Counted from the first letter of the stretch, positions 15,329 through 29,704 are shown. The stretch: 41,559 bases of DNA from Lenisia limosa (GCA_001655205.1 LPNZ01010237.1:1-41559), one strand, 5' to 3'. Numbers and translations: made by a program. The notes: generated by a model from the sequence alone, not told the origin.

Positions 15329-16810
15329 ATGGTGGAGACTAGTCGCAGGCCCGGCGGTTAGTGGTTGTATTGGATACTGTCGTCTTGAAATCAACGAATT
15401 ATGTTATAACCATCCTTAGGCGGTGCCTTTAAGCAGCAACGCCTTCCTGCCTGGCAACCTTTATTGACACCCTCTGCTGTAATTCCCACATATATCACGC
15501 TAGCTATCATTTTTATCCCTGTTGGAATTGTTCTGCTCTTGTTTTCGCAATCGGTGAGTTCATTTTTTTGTTTACTCTCGGCCTAACTGCAAAATGTTGA
15601 CTTTTTAGCTTCAAGAATATTCTGTTGAGTATACTGGAGTTACTGAATGCGAGCTGAAGAAAGGAACGAACGTTACATCTTGTACTCTTCAGTTCGACGT
15701 CAAGAAGGATATGGATGCCCCTGTTTATGCCTACTATAAGCTGACAAACTTCTATCAGAACCACCGTCGTTATGTTAGGTCCAGAAATGACGAACAACTC
15801 CGCGGAAATAACCCTTCTTTTTCTTCGATGGAGGATTGTGACCCTCGTCGGTCTATTGGTGATGAAAATGACCCTACTAAGTACTGGAACCCCTGTGGAC
15901 TAATTGCTGCTTCTATGTTTAACGGTAAGTTAGTCCTCCTTTGTTTTCTTGGTTTTTTCATTCCATTGTTCGGTAGTATTTTTGTAAAAGCTAAATACTT
16001 ACAGATACATTTGCTCTCAAGAAGCCTGATGGAACTGATGTTGCGTGGACCAAGTCTGGAATTGCATGGGAAAGTGATGTTGATGAGAAGTTCAAGAAGC
16101 AGAGCAAGCCTGTTGGAATCCAACCCACCACCTGGCCCCCTGGTATGCCGCTTGTTGGAGAAAATGAAAGAAATTGCGAATGATGATATAACAAGATAAA
16201 ACGTGTCCAATTTTTACTCTTCAAGGTGTGGACTCAGTGGAAGACGAGGACTTCATTGTGTGGATGCGTACCGCTGGACTTCCCCACTTCAAAAAGCTCC
16301 ATCGTATCATTGACACGGACCTCTCCGCCGGTACCTACACGTTAACTGTTAATAACAGTAGGCAAACTAGGCGTTTCTTTAAATATATATAAATCATGTA
16401 TTGCTTTTGTAGGGGACTCTTGAAGAGGCTTGGAAGCTTAGGACATTTGTATAATATTTTGACAAGTGTAGGGTTCCCTGTTGAGGAGTTTGATGGAACC
16501 AAACAGTTTGTTCTTGCGACTACATCGTCAATTGGTGGCCGTAATATGTTCCTTGCCTTCGCGTATATTGTTGTTGGTCTCCTTTGTCTGACCCTCGGCA
16601 TCGTGTTTCTTCTTAGGAATTCTTTCTCCCCAAGGTTTGCAAGGATTAGATATTTTGGTTTTGTTCTATCATTTCAATTATACATAATGTTGGCAAATAC
16701 CCCCCCCCCCCCNNNNNNNNNNNNNNNNNNNNNNNNNNNNNNNNNNNNNNNNNNNNNNNNNNNNNNNNNNNNNNNNNNNNNNNNNNNNNNNNNNNNNNNN
16801 NNNNNNNNNN
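15329..16810 (+). CDS. CDC50: CDC50/LEM3 family P4-ATPase (flippase) beta subunit; last exon probably in the N gap, so the end is approximate
   Basis: [77 protein letters not shown] and STIGGRN-type [19 protein letters not shown] are diagnostic CDC50 motifs. The last visible exon ends at 16634. Confidence 0.92.
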
Positions 16811-17109
16811 NTTCCCTCATTCTTCCTATGCTTTTCAAGAACGTTGCCTCTTGTATTTTTCCATATTCATGTTGTTAATCTTTTTGTTGATTACTTACGT
16901 TGTAGAATATTGGGGGATCAAAAGTACCTTGCATGGGATCGTAAGCTGTAGAGATTGTACGTGTATTTGTTTCTTTTTGATTTTTCTAGTTTTTATGTCC
17001 TTTTTGGCCATGAAATGGAGGAGGGGAGGGGGGTAATAGTATATTCTATAGTGAATAACCTGTGAAGTTATTCACTGTACCAAACAATAAAACATAACCC
17101 CATGCTGCT

Positions 17110-19783: not shown

Positions 19784-22700
19784 ATGAGCGTGATTGAGCC
19801 AATAATGGTATGTTAATGAATATTCAAGAGAAAGTTACGCATTTCAGGATGTTGCCCCATCTGATGCAGCTGTTGAACCGATCCAGAACCAGGTCACTGC
19901 CCCTGTTGCTGGAGAGATCGAATCTGCCCCAATGCCTGTCCAGCAACCTGTGCCCGAACCAGAAATGCCAGTTTCTAACATCCCCATTCCAAAAGAAGCC
20001 GAACAACCTGCCCAGCCCATGGTATGCTTGCGCGCCATTTTTTTTTTTTTTTTTCATATGATCTGTGATGCATATTAGTGTTCCACTCACTCCGGGATCT
20101 TCATTCTTAATATTATAGATGCAAGCACCAGCACCTGTTCTTCAGCAACAAATGAACCAAGTCGCTCCCCAGGCCCCAACTTCAATCCAAGATTCCCGCA
20201 CCTCTCCTGAACCTTCTTCTGTATGCCAACCCACTCTTATCTTTTCATTCTTATTTTCCAAATTAATATTTTTTTGGTTTTCACTTGTCATTTTTGTGTA
20301 TGACATCTGTAGTTCGCCGAAGCCGTGTCCCCTCTCACTCGCCCCCACCGCACTCGCAGAAAGCGCACTGACCGCAATTACAGAGACCTGGAGAGTATTC
20401 CTTACGAATATGTAAGCAAAGGGCATATCAGGTAATTAACCGCACACACCCCTGTTCCTAATTTTCTTCGTGTTTCTTATTTTATAGGATAACGAACCTA
20501 TGATCGAGCCAACTCGTGACGACTATGTTCTCCCCGAGGTATACATCCCCCTCTTCGTATCCCACAGATTATGATCCACCCTCCCCTTTTGACTCCTTAG
20601 GACGATTATGCTGAAGACAAGAAGGGTGTTAAGACCCGCAAGCCGTACAAGAAGCGCGGTATGTTTGAATAATCTTTGGTAATTGTACTTATTTTGGTGC
20701 AAGTGAGCTTCTTTGTCTAACCCGATAGGCCCCAAGCGCAAGCGTGACGATATCGAGTACAGTGAAGAAGGCGCTGAACCCAAGGTTTGCTCAAAATGAT
20801 ATTACTTCGCAATTAAGCCCTTCTTACCAAATTCAGGAGGTTGGTGAACAGCCCGAGAAGGTGAAGAAGACCCCTGGCCGCAAGAAGAAGACTCCTATCG
20901 TTAAGTAAGCCTTTTTAATTCTCTTTCTGAGTTACTGGGATCATTCTCACTTTTCCAGGACTGCGCCTACCCCCGTTTCCAAGCCAGCTGTTTGTGGATT
21001 ACTATTATACCTGTCAAAAAAACCTTCAACCAATTCTTTTATTGTCAACTGCTGGTGTTTGTTTTTATTCCACAGATGACAGCCACCATGCAGCAGCAGC
21101 AGCTTCTCCAGCAATTCGCTGCCCACCAGGCCCAGCTCAATGCTTCAGGAAAGACCGACAAACAAGCCCTTGCACAACAGGTTAGCTAAGAAGTAAACGA
21201 TTGGTGTGTTGGCTGTTGTGTTTCCTTCTGACCCGGTTCAGATTGTCCTTCAACAGCAGCTTGCACATCAGTATCACAACGCCGCCCAGCAACTCATGCA
21301 GAGAAGTCAACAGGCTAACCAAGTCGGCCAGACCGCACAAGCTGCTCAGTACCAGCAACAAGCCCAGGTCCGTGGCCATATTGTGTCTTTTCTACCACTT
21401 TTCTTTTTAAATCTCCATCTCATCCCCGTTTTTCCTCTGGTAACCGAGATAGGTTCAATACCAAGCCGCACAGCAACTCGCCATGGCTGCCACTCAGCAG
21501 TACCAGCAACTCCAGCAAGCACAGCAATTGGCTGTAAGTTGGGTAATCATTGCGTTTCCGCTTCCACCAGTTTTTGTGATCATATCATGACCTTTTTTTG
21601 GAATCTACATCCTTCTTTTTATTTACTCACTTCCCAGGCCGAGACACCCGCCGAGGCTCCCAGCACCGCCGCTACCACAGAGCCCTCTGAGCCTCAGGTG
21701 CCTTCAGTACCCTCGGTCTGTTGGGATCCGGATTTTAGTCGTATGAGTATTTGGAATTTTGATATGGAAGCTGCTGAAGTGCCTAGTATTTATTTAACAA
21801 ACCCCCAGGCCGAATCCGTGGAACCCACGCAACCCACTGAACAAGCCCCTGTCACTACCCCACAGGAGCCCCAAGTGCCGCAGGTGCCCCAGCAACCCGT
21901 TGTCCAGGCTTCGGAGGTGCCCCAGGTTCCTCAGGTTCCCCAGGTTCCTGAAGTGCCAAAAGAGGAGGTAAAGGAAGAGATTAAGGTAGAAACCAATGAA
22001 GAAGTGAAGGAAGAGGTCAAGGAGGAGATGAACGAAGAGGCTAAGGAGGAGGTGAAGGAAGAAGTTGCTGCTGAGCAGCCTGCAGGTGAACCTGTCCAGG
22101 TTTGTAGTTCTTAATGAGGTCATATTTTTTGTGCCTTGACGTTTTTTTTATTATTTTTATTATTATGTTTTTTGTGCTTATGTCAAGTCATTATGTGCTT
22201 CAGGAAGCCGCTGCCCCTGCCGCTGAGGAACAACAGCAACAGCCAGGCGCTGTAAAGGTCAGTGTAATATTTTTGAGTGCTTTCTCTTCACTGATCTATA
22301 AGAAATTTACCTATTAACTACATCTGTCTTTCGCAGCCACATTTGACTGTTCAGACTGAAGAGCCAGCCGTGAAACTCACACCTGCCCAGGTTGGTACCC
22401 GTTTCATACTTCTTCTGTCAGAGGCAATCTGTCTCCAAGCTTTTTGACCCCACAGGAACAGATGCAAGCACTCCATGCACAGTTCCAGAACCAACAAGCC
22501 CAAGTCGTGCAACATTACCATGGCCAAGCTATGGCCTATACTCAGCGCCTACAGGCCCAAGCCTCTCAGTATTCCATGTCTCCCGATCTCACCGATGAGA
22601 AGAAGAAGGAGCTTGTCACAGACCTCCAAGTAGGGAGGAGGGGAGGGGGGGTCTTAGTATTATTATTATTTGTGATTAGAGTTTCACTGACCTTCCCTAG

Positions 22701-23581: not shown

Positions 23582-26500
23582 TTAGAGGGTGAGGGTGGCG
23601 AGCATGCCGAGAACCTGAGCGGTGGACTTGGGCTCCTCGAACTTAGCGCCAATCTTGGTGCAGACGGCCTTCATGGCGTCCTTCTCGGCGTGGATGTTGG
23701 CAATGAGCTCCTTGTAGCCCTGAAGAGAGTTAACTTGACTCCATCATAATCGTATCAATAGAAGGAACAAACGAGGCCTCGAAACAATCACTTATGCATA
23801 CCTCAGCCTTAGCCATCTCGATGATGTGGTTGAGGATGGCCATTCCGAGGCCTTGGCGGCGGTTGGTGGGGTCGACGAGAACAACCCACTCACCTACACG
23901 AGTTATTGGGGAAAGATGTACACAAAGATGACCAATTTGACTTCACAGTACAGTATATCATGAAAGACACCTACCAGCGGTCTGCTTGGAGAGAACGCGA
24001 GTAAGACGGCCCATTGCAACGATCTTGCCCTCGACCTCAGCGATAACGGGGATTTCGTAGTCGTAGTTACCGAAGAACATGCCACGAGCCTGGAGAGCCT
24101 CCATCTTGGTCTTGGCAGCATTGCGAAGGCGAAGGTACTTGTAGGCGGGCTAAAGGGGTCAGAAAAGACGCTGAATGGGAGCAATGGTACAAAAAACAGC
24201 AGTATTGCGTAACACACCTCATCCTGGGCCTCCTCAATGACAGAAGCTGGGAGTCCATCGAAGAAAGCGGAAAGAAGAGGCTCATCCTCGGGGCGGACGG
24301 GGCGGATCTGGACGTCCTTATCTCCGGCCTTAACAACCTTCTCGTACTCCTGGGGGTAAGAGCGGATGGCGCCCTTGACCTTGTCTTCAGCGTTCTTGTG
24401 GAGGAGGACACGAGCGTCGAGAGCGACAAGCTCGGTCTCGGAAATGAGAAGGGGGTTGATGTCGAGCTCAGCAATCCATTCGTGCTCGTGGATGAGCTGG
24501 GAAAGGTTGACGAGGACGGCAGTGAGAGCCTCCATGTCACAGGGGCCGAGGCCACGGACACCACGAAGAGCAGTGGCAATCCTAGATGGTGAATTGTTGG
24601 GTGAACACAAAAAGAAGAAGGGTAGTGATTAGGAGGAAGAAAAAACAATTTGGCGTACTTAGTCTGGTCGATGAGATCGCGGGCATGCTGGGCGGAGAGG
24701 GGAGGGATGGTAAGAGCGGTATCCTTGAACACCTCTACGAGGGTTCCACCGGAGCCGAAGACCATGACGGGGCCGAACTGGGGGTCGGTAGTGCAACCAC
24801 AGAGGAGCTCATAGCTGAAGGTCATAAGTAAAGAATGGAAGGGGCGGGGGNNNNNNNNNNNNNNNNNNNNNNNNNNNNNNNNNNNNNNNNNNNNNNNNNN
24901 NNNNNNNNNNNNNNNNNNNNNNNNNNNNNNNNNNNNNNNNNNNNNNNNNNNNNNNNNNNNNNNNNNNATGCGTTGGACGGAGACACCGCCGAAGTGCTCG
25001 GCACCAGCCTTGGTGGTAACGTTGTGCTTGATGGTCTCGAAACCGGCCTTGACGGCAGCAGTGTCCTTGATGTTGAGGAGAACACCTCCGATGTCGGACT
25101 TGTGGGTGAGAGTGTCGGAGTGAATCTTGAGAACGACGGGGAAGCCGAGCTTCTCAGCGGCGGCAGCGCACTCATCGACGGAAGTGGTCACAACAGTGGA
25201 GCAGACTGAAGGAGGTTAGTTGATAACAACACAATTCTAAATCTGGGGAAAAGGTAGAGTGAATACCGGGGATCTTGTAGGCGGCGAGGACCTCCTTAGA
25301 CTCATGCTCGGAGAGGATGTCACGGTTCTCGGAACGGGCCTTCTCGAGGATGGCGTTGACAGCGTCCTTAGCGACGGTGGCCTGGGAGGNNNNNNNNNNN
25401 NNNNNNNNNNNNNNNNNNNNNNNNNNNNNNNNNNNNNNNNNNNNNNNNNNNNNNNNNNNNNNNNNNNNNNNNNNNNNNNNNNNNNNNNNNNNNNNNNNNN
25501 NNNNNNNNNNNNNNNNNNNNNNNNNNNNNNNNNNNNNNNNNNNNNNNNNNNNNNNNNNNNNNNNNNNNNNNNNNNTAAAACAAAAAGGAACCCAGACCAG
25601 TTGATTCGGCAACACTGCATCACATCACTCCACAGCGTATGGGGGGAGGAGGAATAAGCTAGAAAAAAAAGGAGCCAACCTCGGTGGCAAGAGCCTTAGG
25701 GATAGCAATTGGGGTAGTGTAGAGGCTCTCGAGGTTGTGGCTGTACTTCCACATGAAGTTGAACATGCGGCAGGCGGTATCGGGGTACTCGAAAACGGGG
25801 ATGCCACACTGGGTGAGGATGTCCTTACCCTTCTGGACGGAGTCAGCTCCCATCCATGAGCAGAGGAGGGGCTAAATGGGTCAGACGTGAACGGATGCCA
25901 TCAGAAAAAAGATAGAAAAACTAATGAAAGACAAACCTTGCCGGCGGCGCGGAACTTCTCGGCAATCTTGGAAACGTGCTCAGCAGTGGCAGTGGGGTCA
26001 GTCATGTCCTGTTGTGGACATTAGATGGCAATACAATTAGGGTTGATAAGAAGACAAGATAACCAACCTGGGGAGTGAGGATGACGAGGGCACCGTCGTT
26101 CTTCTCGTCCTCAACAAGGAACTCGAGGGACTTGGCGTAGCTGAATGGTCAAAAGTGTGTTCAGAAGTAGTTGAATCAAAAAAAAAACAATTACGTAAGC
26201 TTACAGCTCGGGCTTGGCGTCACCAAGGATATCGACGGGGTTACCACGAGACCAAGCACCGGGGAGGATGGAAGAGAGCTGGTCGAAAGTGTCCTTAGAG
26301 ATCTCGGCAAGCTCGCCACCGGCAGAGCAGAGAGCGTCAGTGGCAAGAACGGCGGGACCACCAGCGTTGGTGAGGATGGTCAGACGGTTGCCAGCAGGCT
26401 TGGGCTGCTTGGAAAGGACCTGTGACATGAAGAAGAGGTCTTCGATGTGGTCAACACGGAGAACACCGGCGCGCTCGAAAGCAGCATCGAGGGTCTTATC

Positions 26501-27633
26501 TACATATGTGAGCGAAGAAACGAGAGTAGAGAATGGTAATGGTAGAAATGCATACCGGAACCGGCGAGGGTACCGGTGTGAGAAGCAGCAGCAGCGGCAG
26601 CAGCCTCAGTACGGCCAGACTTGATAACAATGATGGGCTTGTTGAGAGCGACTAAAAAACAATAAGCAAATATTAATTAAACACAATTAGATATCAGAGA
26701 TTATCACTCACCAGTACGGGCAGCGTTGAGGAACTCGCGAGCGTTACCAATAGATTCCATATAGATGATAATGGACTCAGTGGTGGCGTCCTGGCCAAGG
26801 TAGGAGATGAGATCACCCCACTTGAGGTCAACCATGGAACCGATGGAGATGAAGTGAGAGAAACCGATCTGCTCCTAAAAATAATGTGAGTGGCCGAAAA
26901 AAGAAGAATGCTGAAAATGATTCGGGGGGTAGCTTTCAAACACTAACCTTGTGGGCCCAATCGAGGATGGCAGTGCAGAGAGCGCCAGACTGAGAGATGA
27001 AGGCGACGGAACCCTTACGGGCCTGAGAGTTGGCGAAAGTAGCATTGAGACCAGAAACTAAAAAAAATATAAACTTTTGGTCCGTTTGGAGTGATTCTTA
27101 CCAGGGGAAAGAAGACCAAGGCAGTTAGGACCAAGGATGCGGATGCGTCCCTTAGCGGCTTCACCCATGAACTGGTCAATGAGAACCTGTCCTTCCTCTC
27201 CCATCTCAGCGAAACCAGCGGAGAGAACGATGGCGGCAGGCACATCGCAGGCAACAAGGTCCTAAAGTCCCATTAGAAGCGTGTTAAATACATATTCGGG
27301 TATAATGACAACAAGAGCACACCTTAATGCAACCAGCAACGTGGTGGGCAGGAACGCAGATGCAGGCAAGGTCAATCTTCTCAGGGATCTTAGAGACAGA
27401 GGTGTAGGCCTGAAGATAGTAAAAAGAAGGTTCTCCAAAAAAAAAAAACTCACGCGAATGCCAAGAACACTGGGGCGCTTGGGGTTCACTGGGTAAACGG
27501 TACCGCCAAAGGGAGAAGAGACGATGTTCTTAAGAAGCACACGTCCAACAGATCCAACCTTCTCGGTGGCGCCAATGACGGCGACAGCCTTAGGGAAGAA
27601 GAGATTATCAAGAGGGGAATCAACCTTAACCAT
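23582..27633 (-). CDS. ADP-forming acetate-CoA ligase (fused alpha/beta, ATP-grasp) with C-terminal GNAT acetyltransferase domain; about 15 introns
   Basis: [30 protein letters not shown] (CoA binding), [30 protein letters not shown] (phospho-His), [57 protein letters not shown] and ELDINPLL. These are followed by the GNAT region IRPVRPEDE...[16 protein letters not shown] at 23582-23584. Confidence 0.93.
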
Positions 27634-27678
27634 TTTGGAAAAAGGACTAGAGAGAAAAAAAAAAGCAATTTTTATACT

Positions 27679-27690
27679 AATCACGTGATT
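27679..27690. promoter_or_regulatory. Palindromic E-box AATCACGTGATT just upstream of the acetate-CoA ligase start
   Basis: Perfect 12-bp palindrome with a CACGTG core, 46 nt upstream of the ATG at 27633 (minus strand). Confidence 0.35.
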
Positions 27691-28170
27691 TGCGTTATAG
27701 CGCCAAGTTTTTGCGCAATATTTGTTACGAGTATCCGGCTACAAGGCGCTATCTGCTGTTATTCCGCCGAATATATTTATATTCTATAGTTATATATGAG
27801 AATAGATTGCAATTAGCACCTTAAAAGGAATATCCGATCCCGAAATGAATGGCTCGGATGTAAATCCGAGATTCACATTTTGATCTTGTGCTCCCGACTC
27901 CCGATGAGTATAGATTCTCGGTTTCTCCTGCTTAATGTGTGAAATATTGATCGAACGTGGGGAGATGATATTCGTTCGTTGTATCTCCTTAATAATGCCC
28001 ATATATTTGCTCTCACAACACACACCACTCTCAACTATTTTTTGATTTCACTCTCAACAATCTTCAACAGCCCCCTGCTCAGTGATCATTCATTTGATAT
28101 ATTTGTGAGATACAATTCCGAAAGGATTTCTTGATACACTATATCAAGAGATAGAAAGAAACAATGACAC

Positions 28171-29704
28171 TTAAGCCTTGAAGACACGCTGGGTGTTGCG
28201 CTTGCAGAGAGCACGGAGGGTCTCGGGGACGGAGTCGAACTTGCCGAGGAGGATGGCGGAGGCAATGACGTAAGGCTTGTGAGAGGCCTCGTCGTAAGTC
28301 TCCTTCCGGTAGCGCTCGAAGACGGAAAGGGCGACTTCACCGTTGACGGCGTTGAGGCCAGTGATGTCAGCGGGGAGGCAATGCATGTAGTGGGCCTTGC
28401 CGCCATTGGTAAGGGCCATGAGCTCCTCAGTGCACTCCCAGTCGAGGTGCTTGGCGTTGTTAGCAAGGCACTCCTTCTCGAGAGCAGCGAGCTTGGTCTT
28501 AGAGTCTTCCTCACGGAGGAGCTTGACGCGACGCTCCATGACGTGGAAAGGAGCCCATGACTTGGGGTAGACAACATCGGCATCTGAGAAGTCATGTGGT
28601 ACCACCATATATGTTGAAAAAAGAAAGACGCCCACATACCCTTGAAGGCTTCGGCCATAGTGGCAACCTGGGTGAACTTTCCACCACCGAGCTCAGCACA
28701 CTTCTTAGCCTCGTCTAAAATAATGAGATTGTTCACGAAGAGGCTGAACATCAAATGTGAGCGCAGAAAATATGCAACATTCAGAGAGAGATCCCCACAT
28801 ACCGACGATCTCGGGGAGGAGACCGTAGCCCTCGGGGTGAGCGAGACGGACCTCGGCACCAAAGCGGGGGAGGAGAGTGATCAAAGACTGGGGAACGGAA
28901 AGAGGCTTTCCGTAGGCGGGAGACATAGCCCAGGTGACAGCAATCTTCTTGCCCTTAACACCTTCGAGACCACCGTAGAGAGAAGCGATGTGGAGGAGAT
29001 CGGACATAGATTGAGTGGGGTGGTCCTGATCGCACTGGAGGTTGACGAGGACGGGGCGCTGGGGGAGAACACCCTCCTGAATTGATTAGAATAAAGTGAA
29101 AAAAACGAAAAGAGAGGAGGGAAGAGGAAGTCACACAAAAAAAAAGATTTATTCCAGGAATTGTCACAAGGTCACGTCCACAAACATCGAAGCCTTGCTG
29201 GACAGCGGTGGCAACCTCAGTCTGGTACTTATGACCCTCATGGATGTAGAGATCGTCACGGATACCGATAACCTCAGTAAGGAAAGAGATCATGTTGGCG
29301 GTTTCACGGACAGTCTCACCATGAGAGATCTGGGACTTAGCCTCATCAAGGTCGTTGACGGTAAGGCCAAGGAGCTGGCAAGCGGAAGCGAAAGAGAAAC
29401 GAGCTAAAAATGATAAATTACAAAAGGCAACTTGAGGAACATACTGCGAGTGGAGTTATCACGGAAGTTAGAGACAGCAAGTCCAGAGTTGAAGACCTTG
29501 CAGTCAATGTTCTCCTTGTACATCTCCTCGAGGCAACGAGCAGTGTAGAAAACAGCCTCAACCTGAGCCTGGGTCATCTTCCAGGTGCGAAGGTAGTCTA
29601 AAAAAGTAAAACCTTTCCTGGCATGCTCAAAACTAACCCTTGCCCTTCCATTCGGCACCAGTGGCCTCAAGCTTGTTGATAAGTTCCTGGATCTTCTGAG
29701 ACAT
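28171..29704 (-). CDS. ygeW: YgeW-type knotted carbamoyltransferase (bacterial family) with five spliceosomal introns
   Basis: The spliced protein is collinear with E. coli YgeW as I recall it: KVFNSGLAVSNFRDNSTRTRFSFAS, SQISHGETVRETANMISF, IGIRDD, GVLPQRPVLVNLQCDQDHPTQSMSDL, KGKKIAVTWAMSPAYGKPLSVPQ, LAHPEGY, DADVVYPKSWAP, YMHCLPADI, EASHKPYVIA. Introns at about 29598-29637, 29404-29444, 29077-29184, 28715-28802 and 28584-28638, all GT-AG. Confidence 0.93.

Follow-up and report, generated by a model that had tools for sequence, protein, structure and literature searches.

The anaerobic protist Lenisia limosa carries two adjoining genes of bacterial type, and the question raised by this locus is whether they are the two ATP-yielding ends of a single fermentation of urate or other purines, as a sequence-only reading had proposed, or neighbours by chance. 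The pair lies in a stretch of 41,559 nt (hereafter, the 41.5-kb window), in which a gene for a YgeW-type, presumably knotted carbamoyltransferase (ygeW) is followed in tandem on the minus strand, 537 nt away, by a gene for a putative ADP-forming acyl-CoA synthetase fused to a GNAT acetyltransferase (ACD-GNAT). On the evidence presented below, we consider it rather probable that these are two independent genes of bacterial ancestry that adjoin by chance, and that each product would nevertheless function individually much as proposed.

Gene structures and transcription

In the splicing model, ygeW (28171–29704, minus strand) comprises six exons (29704–29638, 29597–29445, 29403–29186, 29076–28803, 28714–28640 and 28583–28171; from the ATG at 29704 to the last base of the stop codon at 28171) that encode 399 amino acids, and ACD-GNAT (23582–27633, minus strand), with its ATG at 27633 and the last base of its stop codon at 23582, comprises 17 exons that encode 907 amino acids. 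In both genes, an upstream in-frame stop is followed by the first ATG, which is taken as the start. The intergenic spacer (27634–28170, minus strand) extends from the ygeW stop to the ACD-GNAT start and measures 537 nt, confirming the previously noted head-to-tail arrangement with about 540 nt between the genes. The genes on either side are ordinary eukaryotic ones (a CDC50 gene at ~15.6–16.9 kb and a Sec1-family gene at ~32–34.8 kb), and the pair does sit among unrelated housekeeping genes. As also noted before, targeting presequences are absent from both proteins, the N-termini of which are flush with those of bacterial homologues in alignments. Codon bias is alike in the two genes (GC3 of 0.69 and 0.67).

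Twenty-one GT-AG introns are proposed (5 in ygeW and 16 in ACD-GNAT), and at least 15 of these are seen as joints in RNA contigs from a polyA library among the joints listed, including all five of ygeW, which are present in a contig of 1258 nt; the ACD-GNAT RNA contig (2656 nt) likewise contains proposed joints. Both genes are well covered by RNA.

Two assembly gaps fall within ACD-GNAT. Both are harmless and leave the reading frame unbroken, given that the RNA contigs agree with a gap-free contig from ENA (L088) that matches the window at 100% on either side of each gap. The first gap (25390–25575) lies wholly in intron 10; its true fill is 149 nt, including a tandem duplication and homopolymer runs (L088 7515–7663), which gives an intron of 261 nt, and the RNA joint 25380/25679 skips the gap with zero letters between. 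The second gap (24851–24967; fill of 64 nt) covers the final 18 nt of exon 12 together with the 5' portion of intron 12 (82 nt). These 18 exon bases are in frame and complete the seven codons MVNTKDA, the 18 letters found at the RNA joint are identical to L088 8086–8103 (where GTAAGA comes next), and the Pfam ATP-grasp_5 profile reaches position 104 before the gap and resumes at 110 after it. The two genes are, in short, intact, expressed, intron-bearing nuclear genes of bacterial ancestry.

YgeW and its bacterial gene context

Every tested exon of ygeW matches the NCBIfam YgeW equivalog models TIGR03316 and NF005538. When exon pieces are scored, with exons 1 and 5 (47 amino acids) left out of the sums, the approximate total is ~499 bits for NF005538 (50.8 + 115.7 + 150.3 + 182.7; cut-off 453) and ~485 bits for TIGR03316 (cut-off 500). 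The protein is 61–62% identical to bacterial YgeW (~62% being the maximum with any bacterium found), keeps 120 of the 130 columns that are near-invariant in bacteria (92%; residue 341, a near-invariant Cys in bacteria, is Ala) and has the carbamoyl-phosphate-binding motifs STRTR (residue 71), HPTQ (165) and HCLP (330). Judged by these family models and conserved positions, the first gene product is a YgeW orthologue, and on this point the sequence-only reading holds. In the YgeW tree, it occupies a long branch that joins no particular one of many phyla, and no single donor emerges.

The Lenisia protein belongs by the equivalog models to the same family as YgeW of Escherichia coli and Clostridium sporogenes (that is, of the 2,8-dioxopurine or reductive urate pathway), with which it shares length (396 versus 399 amino acids, which we count as the same), flush termini and carbamoyl-phosphate motifs; unlike those bacterial proteins, it has a nuclear gene in a eukaryote, which is interrupted by five spliceosomal introns and yields a polyA transcript. 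YgeW cleaves 2,3-diureidopropionate phosphorolytically to carbamoyl phosphate, from which carbamate kinase makes ATP (bioRxiv 10.1101/2025.04.24.650524; PMC12507026); this activity is known for the E. coli enzyme only (same references). At 80 genome loci of bacterial ygeW, the neighbours include ygeY (55/80), ssnA (42/80), xdh (24/80) and yqeA (22/80), and the gene context at 80 metagenome loci resembles this; the nearest bacterial YgeW relatives thus reside in purine-degradation clusters. Orthology and bacterial gene context support a role of Lenisia YgeW in the conversion of purines to carbamoyl phosphate. The Lenisia gene differs from the bacterial 2,8-dioxopurine cluster in that ygeY, ygeX, hyuA, yqeA, ssnA, ygfK and xdh do not adjoin it in the window: in a tblastn search of the 41.5-kb window with 21 E. 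coli purine-cluster proteins, only YgeW found a match (0/20 for the others).

The ACD-GNAT fusion protein

Pfam matches on the exons give the domain order CoA_binding_2, Succ_CoA_lig, Ligase_CoA_2, ATP-grasp_5 and a C-terminal GNAT. The ACD phosphohistidine is found in exon 6 as His258 (codon 26578–26580, minus strand) in an SHTG loop, aligned on H254 of the ckcACD1 alpha chain (4xyl_A; residues 232–261). The second catalytic histidine, His549 (codon 25102–25104, minus strand), is part of the ATP-grasp domain motif HKSDIGGV and aligns with the ACD beta chain 4xyl_B and the ADP-forming CoA ligases 8wzu and 9y43, its equivalent in PatZ being H531. The GNAT domain (23582–24330, minus strand, start approximate), supported by alignment with PatZ, the bacterial protein P0023 and P0036 of the anaerobic protist Barthelona sp. 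PCE, is ~170–250 amino acids long, with an approximate N-terminal border. It contains Glu833 (encoded at 23891–23889), aligned with the catalytic E809 of PatZ, and motif A (R843-x-x-G846-x-G848); Acetyltransf_1 matches the 30-amino-acid exon 16 (E 0.0016), and ACD-GNAT homologues carry PF00583/PF13302. The earlier identification of the second gene as an ADP-forming acetate-CoA ligase therefore stands in part: the ACD is present with both catalytic histidines, but the GNAT fused to its C terminus had been overlooked. Because both histidines are kept, the product is probably an ADP-forming acyl-CoA synthetase that makes ATP from acetyl-CoA.

The same fusion occurs in bacteria, where P0023 is collinear and 48.7% identical over residues 6–899 of ACD-GNAT. 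The closest bacterial relatives are Acidobacteria/Cyanobacteria-type proteins (53% to a Bryobacterales metagenome-assembled genome). Bacterial ACD-GNAT proteins (of Acidobacteria, Cyanobacteria and others) share 49–53% identity, the five-domain order and the His/His/Glu residues with the Lenisia protein, which differs in being eukaryotic and split by 16 introns. Barthelona P0036 is 42% identical and has the identical fusion, and the His/His/Glu combination prevails in this fusion family (119/152 other fusion proteins compared). Kin of P0023 are named 'bifunctional acetate--CoA ligase family protein/GNAT family N-acetyltransferase', a name that is annotation only, as we know of no biochemically characterised bacterial ACD-GNAT protein; nor did we find in the literature a measurement of enzyme activity for a His-retaining ACD-GNAT fusion. 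The catalytic core and both histidines are shared with ckcACD1 of Korarchaeum, metamonad ACS1–3 and the ACDs of Giardia and Entamoeba. In common with ADP-forming acetyl-CoA synthetases, the Lenisia protein has a fused alpha–beta chain and, from its missing presequence, would be cytosolic; unlike them, it bears the extra GNAT.

Linkage of the genes and alternative explanations

None of the tests that we ran ties ygeW to ACD-GNAT, and their adjacency is therefore most likely a coincidence. That the pair instead forms a functional module, either a co-regulated eukaryotic metabolic gene cluster for both ATP ends or the result of joint acquisition, is in our estimation improbable, even though the genes are in tandem at a short distance, are alike in codon bias and are both transcribed, and even though pyruvate is the end point of the bacterial pathway and acetate has been measured as a product. 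Diaminopropionate-derived pyruvate would indeed reach acetyl-CoA, a metabolic link on paper that speaks against chance. However, no ACD gene was found within 6–10 kb of bacterial ygeW at any of 160 loci (80 genome and 80 metagenome), and the closest bacterial relatives of the two proteins differ (YgeW being assignable to no single phylum, and ACD-GNAT being of the Acidobacteria/Cyanobacteria type); both results speak against a common module. Synteny elsewhere fares no better, in that a carbamoyltransferase is absent beside ACD-GNAT at the Barthelona locus, as it is at the nearest bacterial locus, and none of the 20 other E. coli purine-cluster proteins has a match in the window. Nothing points to co-regulation either: the genes are represented by separate RNA contigs that differ ~4.7-fold in word depth, RNA is absent from the spacer in bins 27680–28079 (word depth of 0), and the upstream regions share motifs no better than shuffles do. 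The 3' UTR of ygeW lies inside the spacer, with RNA extending to 28124, and the ACD-GNAT promoter is presumably located within the same 27634–28170 interval. Chance adjacency, which had been raised beforehand as an alternative, is thus the best fit to the lack of linkage in bacterial loci and Barthelona and to the separate transcripts. There is hardly any likelihood that the adjacency itself is an artefact of bacterial contamination or chimeric assembly. The source was a mixed culture (the library is labelled metatranscriptomic) and the scaffold has many gaps; against this stand the 21 GT-AG introns, at least 15 of them removed in polyA RNA among the joints listed, a single DNA contig that covers 25576 to at least 29679, and a gap-free second assembly that repeats the order Sec1, ygeW, ACD and CDC50 at 100% identity.

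Two further explanations concern the functions of the proteins. The more serious, although still unlikely, is that the second gene encodes mainly a type I GNAT lysine acetyltransferase similar to E. coli PatZ and Salmonella Pat, in which the ACD-like part would sense acetyl-CoA and yield no ATP. The Lenisia protein resembles these enzymes in domain order and size (PatZ has 886 amino acids), catalytic Glu and acetyl-CoA motif A, many homologues are named simply 'acetyltransferase' at JGI, and, according to reviews, the ACD-like domain in type I GNATs has a regulatory function and lacks activity (PMC8556138; PMC3195501). Yet the reason given for this inactivity in Pat/PatZ is that the catalytic His is gone (PatZ has L245 and cannot perform the ACD reaction; PMC12184503; PMC3195501), whereas the Lenisia protein, which has the ACD-like and GNAT parts of a type I GNAT, retains both histidines, His258 within a perfectly conserved SHTG loop. 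It also falls on the opposite side of the main tree split from PatZ (SH-aLRT 99), and its metamonad homologues have been treated as ACS (PMC11316075). Far less credible is the recruitment of YgeW in place of ornithine carbamoyltransferase (OTC) in an arginine deiminase pathway. The two belong to one superfamily and have carbamoyl-phosphate-binding motifs in common, and the end steps of that pathway (OTC and carbamate kinase) resemble the YgeW route in proceeding from ureido phosphorolysis through carbamoyl phosphate to ATP; the routes differ in substrate (citrulline versus a purine-derived diureido acid) and in protein type (OTC versus YgeW). The exons score 120–183 bits against YgeW models but 18–25 bits against OTC models, and the conservation of 120/130 YgeW positions argues in the same direction. 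The SMG motif, the ornithine-binding loop of OTCs, is absent, and KSWAP at residue 270 presumably occupies its place.

Proposed functions

Returning to two independent genes with the functions proposed, we infer substrates, ATP yield and localisation as follows. In the cytosol, YgeW would most likely use phosphate to cleave a ureido group of 2,3-diureidopropionate, a step that the bacterial 2,8-dioxopurine (anaerobic urate) pathway also contains, and the resulting carbamoyl phosphate would then yield ATP through a carbamate kinase whose gene lies at another place in the genome. The ADP-forming acyl-CoA synthetase part of ACD-GNAT, likewise cytosolic, would recover ATP from acetyl-CoA, and the GNAT acetyltransferase part keeps its catalytic glutamate. 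ACD would then serve as a general end step for any acetyl-CoA rather than as a purine-specific partner of YgeW, and the adjacency would not derive from a bacterial operon. As a separate observation, the shared strand, closeness, codon bias and RNA cover of the two genes are compatible with shared regulation at the level of chromatin, which is a point against chance. As to the acyl substrate, the close solved relatives of ACD-GNAT act on 3-hydroxypropionate, 4-hydroxybutyrate or DMSP.

A YgeW orthologue in an anaerobic protist

Between positions 23582 and 29704 the window holds two minus-strand genes with short GT-AG introns. The first (ATG at 29704, stop ending at 28171) has six exons and encodes a carbamoyltransferase of 399 aa, and the second (start 27633, end 23582), which lies beyond a spacer of 537 nt, has 17 exons and encodes a 907-aa protein in which an ADP-forming acyl/acetyl-CoA synthetase (ACD) is fused to a C-terminal acetyltransferase (GNAT) domain. 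Exon models, RNA joints and a gap-free ENA contig (ERZ3820729 NODE_265; L088) confirm the two head-to-tail genes of bacterial type described in the sequence-only reading. Their adjacency is physical: the gene order Sec1, ygeW, ACD, CDC50 is also found on L088, and a single DNA contig (run X1) covers 25576 to at least 29679, with the window assembly, L088 and the run X1 contigs possibly derived from the same reads and not fully independent.

We identify the first gene product, on sequence grounds, as an orthologue of YgeW, which bears out the original assignment. Every exon scored matched two NCBIfam 'knotted carbamoyltransferase YgeW' equivalogs far above any model of ornithine or aspartate carbamoyltransferase (OTC or ATC); the last exon, for example, reached 182.7 bits against YgeW and 18–21 bits against ornithine carbamoyltransferase models. 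Only exon pieces of the spliced proteins were used as database queries, and full-length comparisons were scripted; in the latter, identity to YgeW of many bacterial phyla was 61–62% over the full length. Identity to the Escherichia coli protein, taken by segment, was about 42–59%. The protist protein carries the motifs STRTR, HPTQ and HCLP and lacks the SMG motif, the ornithine loop of OTCs. Conservation across 78 bacterial YgeW sequences reaches at least 97% in 130 columns, and 120 of these are unchanged in the protist. One of the ten departures is Ala341 (window about 28344–28346), which sits 8 residues past HCLP at a position occupied by cysteine in at least 97% of those sequences. No other ATG intervenes between an in-frame upstream stop and the start codon, and the N-terminus is flush with that of bacterial YgeW, with no presequence visible in the N-terminal alignment. 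In the tree, the protist sequence forms a long branch without well-supported placement, so that its sequence does not point to a particular donor lineage.

In bacteria, YgeW carries out the phosphorolytic cleavage of a ureido group in 2,3-diureidopropionate, providing ATP together with YqeA, and the pathway ends in diaminopropionate and then, through YgeX, in pyruvate; the YgeW reaction was established only in 2025, in two papers (10.1101/2025.04.24.650524; PMC12507026). Among 80 bacterial genome loci with ygeW, we found ygeY nearby in 55, ssnA in 42, xanthine dehydrogenase (xdh) subunits in 24 and yqeA, the carbamate kinase gene of the purine cluster, in 22, and the context of 80 metagenome loci was similar. 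The purine pathway of YgeW has so far been described as bacterial, and our literature search found neither ygeW nor ssnA assigned to a eukaryote; a preprint on breviate mitochondrion-related organelles makes no mention of ACS, arginine or purines.

No further eukaryotic relatives emerged from our searches: querying a set of 5.8 billion proteins with exon 6 returned bacterial fragments only (at most 65% identity), and a metagenome scan returned only uninterrupted matches, whose best aligned segment reached at most 68% identity, and bacterial purine-cluster genes were frequent on the contigs concerned. Many database 'proteins' of 140–143 aa are C-terminal halves of YgeW. We considered whether YgeW open reading frames of 141–143 aa on long contigs might be split eukaryotic genes and rejected this, as the two that were checked (L089 and L090) lie in bacterial purine clusters; numerous neighbouring genes on L090 are split too, and the short frames look like products of an assembly riddled with frameshifts, not like genuine short genes.

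The presence of an intact, intron-bearing and well-transcribed YgeW in an anaerobic protist suggests that a eukaryote is able to ferment purines for ATP. Of the purine/ureide-to-ATP module put forward in the sequence-only reading, in which ygeW and the ACD gene formed the two ATP-yielding ends of one purine fermentation, the YgeW half is sound and of interest, supported by orthology and by the purine-cluster context of its bacterial counterparts; the pairing with ACD gained no support.

An ACD–GNAT fusion that keeps both ACD histidines

The second gene had been read as an ADP-forming acetate–CoA ligase, a description that fits its ACD domains and histidines and is incomplete, as the C-terminal GNAT domain had been missed. 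Its exons encode CoA_binding_2, Succ_CoA_lig, Ligase_CoA_2 and ATP-grasp_5, in that order, followed by the GNAT domain in roughly the last 170–250 residues, encoded at 23582 to about 24330, and residues 6–899 align end to end with bacterial proteins of about 900 aa that carry PF00583/PF13302 and are named 'bifunctional acetate--CoA ligase family protein/GNAT family N-acetyltransferase' by NCBI. Exon 16 alone (30 aa) matches Acetyltransf_1 (E 0.0016), the catalytic E809 of the E. coli lysine acetyltransferase PatZ has its aligned counterpart in Glu833, and the protein contains the acetyl-CoA motif R-x-x-G-x-G.

The domain architecture is the same as that of type I GNATs (Pat/PatZ), whose ACD-like domain has been called inactive on account of a lost catalytic histidine (PatZ L245 versus H254 of the Korarchaeum enzyme ckcACD1; PMC12184503; PMC3195501; PMC8556138). 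Unlike PatZ, the protist protein retains this residue. Mapping of the ACD residues relied on a PDB alignment together with the PatZ paper: exon 6 aligns with residues 232–261 of 4xyl_A (ckcACD1), so that H254 is matched by His258, which lies in a perfect SHTG loop, and the second conserved histidine is also kept (His549, in HKSDIGGV). The tree places the protein in a clade opposite PatZ (SH-aLRT 99), together with bacterial 'bifunctional' proteins and with those of three eukaryotes, namely Cyanophora, Cyanidiococcus and Barthelona sp. PCE, an anaerobic metamonad; it sits beside archaeplastid and bacterial sequences with no firm placement among them. As both histidines are kept and the protein falls opposite PatZ, we read the ACD part as probably an active ADP-forming acyl-CoA synthetase, and the added GNAT domain is likewise probably an active acetyltransferase. 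Sequence does not disclose the acyl specificity, and the closest relatives of known structure act on acetate, 3-hydroxypropionate, 4-hydroxybutyrate or DMSP.

Among the 152 other fusion proteins compared (protist protein and PatZ left out), 119 have both ACD histidines and the GNAT glutamate, which sits uneasily with reviews that call the ACD-like domain of type I GNATs dead. The Barthelona protein shows this same state; the two Cyanophora copies and the Cyanidiococcus protein keep both histidines, with the GNAT glutamate in only one Cyanophora copy, and carry extra N-terminal residues (about 100 in one Cyanophora copy and in Cyanidiococcus, about 300 in the other Cyanophora copy). A literature search found no study of the dual chemistry of a histidine-retaining ACD–GNAT fusion, and we regard its recognition as a useful by-product of this analysis.

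Adjacency of the two genes

Each of the tests run on the module returned either a negative answer or none. With regard to co-transfer, an ACD–GNAT-like protein was encoded near ygeW in none of 160 bacterial loci (E up to 1e-5; flanks of 6–10 kb wanted per side, shorter at contig ends), and the neighbours of the nearest bacterial ACD–GNAT gene (P0023) include genes for glutamine synthetase and an acylphosphatase. Conserved linkage fares no better, given that the gene in Barthelona, the only other eukaryotic ACD–GNAT locus readable, is flanked by genes for Sec23, an RRM protein, ribosomal protein L16 and a BEACH protein. As to donors, neither tree places the protist protein next to a particular lineage, and a common donor is neither shown nor suggested by them. 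Within the window, tblastn with 21 proteins of the E. coli xdh-ygeW-ssnA-xdhD region found no purine-cluster gene besides ygeW.

Co-regulation is likewise not borne out. The two genes appear on separate RNA contigs of the same polyA library, with no RNA cover over 27680–28079, and their upstream regions share no promoter motif, the longest common string (10 nt) being ordinary for shuffled sequences. Assembler word depth, although a poor measure of expression, is 773 for the ygeW contig (28124–29679) against 164 for the ACD–GNAT contig (23680–27518), a ratio of about 4.7, and points to strong expression of ygeW under the conditions of the culture. The similar codon bias (GC3 of 0.69 for ygeW and 0.67 for ACD–GNAT) is as compatible with two highly used genes as with a shared history. 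We also infer that the link of ACD to purines is not specific, because the enzyme would take acetyl-CoA from any source.

On the locus, RNA and motif tests, the pair is best explained as a chance adjacency of two independently acquired genes, an alternative that the sequence-only reading had itself named, and with the module lacking support the adjacency adds little. A far wider scenario, in which the protist would possess a complete, laterally acquired, cytosolic 2,8-dioxopurine fermentation (anaerobic use of urate/xanthine) with ATP formed at carbamate kinase (via YgeW) and at ACD, and in which ygeW and ACD, once transferred, would have been brought together as a co-regulated metabolic cluster of two genes, seems to us improbable; if true, neither a purine fermentation nor such a gene cluster would have been described in a eukaryote before.

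Introns, assembly gaps and neighbouring genes

Clean joints in polyA RNA contigs match at least 15 of the 21 proposed introns, among them the complete set of five in ygeW. Every mapped intron of the two genes has an AG 3' end, and no introner-like similarity was found among the 19 gap-free introns.

Both assembly gaps are harmless to the gene model. At gap 1 (25390–25575), RNA skips the whole gap within one intron, with zero letters between the two sides; at gap 2 (24851–24967), an RNA contig has 18 extra letters between 24968 and 24814, by which the reading frame is preserved and seven codons (MVNTKDA) are completed, consistent with the Pfam ATP-grasp_5 profile, whose match breaks off at position 104 ahead of the gap and continues from 110 beyond it. 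L088, which contains no N, matches the window with 100% identity on either side of each gap and supplies the true fills: 149 nt of intron 10, with a tandem duplication and homopolymer runs, for gap 1, and 64 nt for gap 2, in which those 18 exon letters precede GTAAGA, the opening of the 82-nt intron 12. With both gaps resolved by RNA and L088, the ACD–GNAT gene is intact. Intron 10 (window 25382–25679; L088 7411–7671) measures 261 nt, compared with 40–109 nt in the other introns, and its direct tandem duplication of about 45 nt and its poly-T and poly-C runs probably caused the scaffold assembly to break at gap 1. Gap 2 also terminates at a C run.

The other genes recognised in the window encode CDC50 and a Sec1-family protein; in the former (15600–16900), the length of one of the introns was estimated at about 65–70 nt. 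Convergent to the 3' end of the ACD–GNAT gene, a plus-strand open frame of 302 codons (21206–22114), rich in Q/P/E repeats and without a Pfam match, probably belongs to a low-complexity eukaryotic gene.
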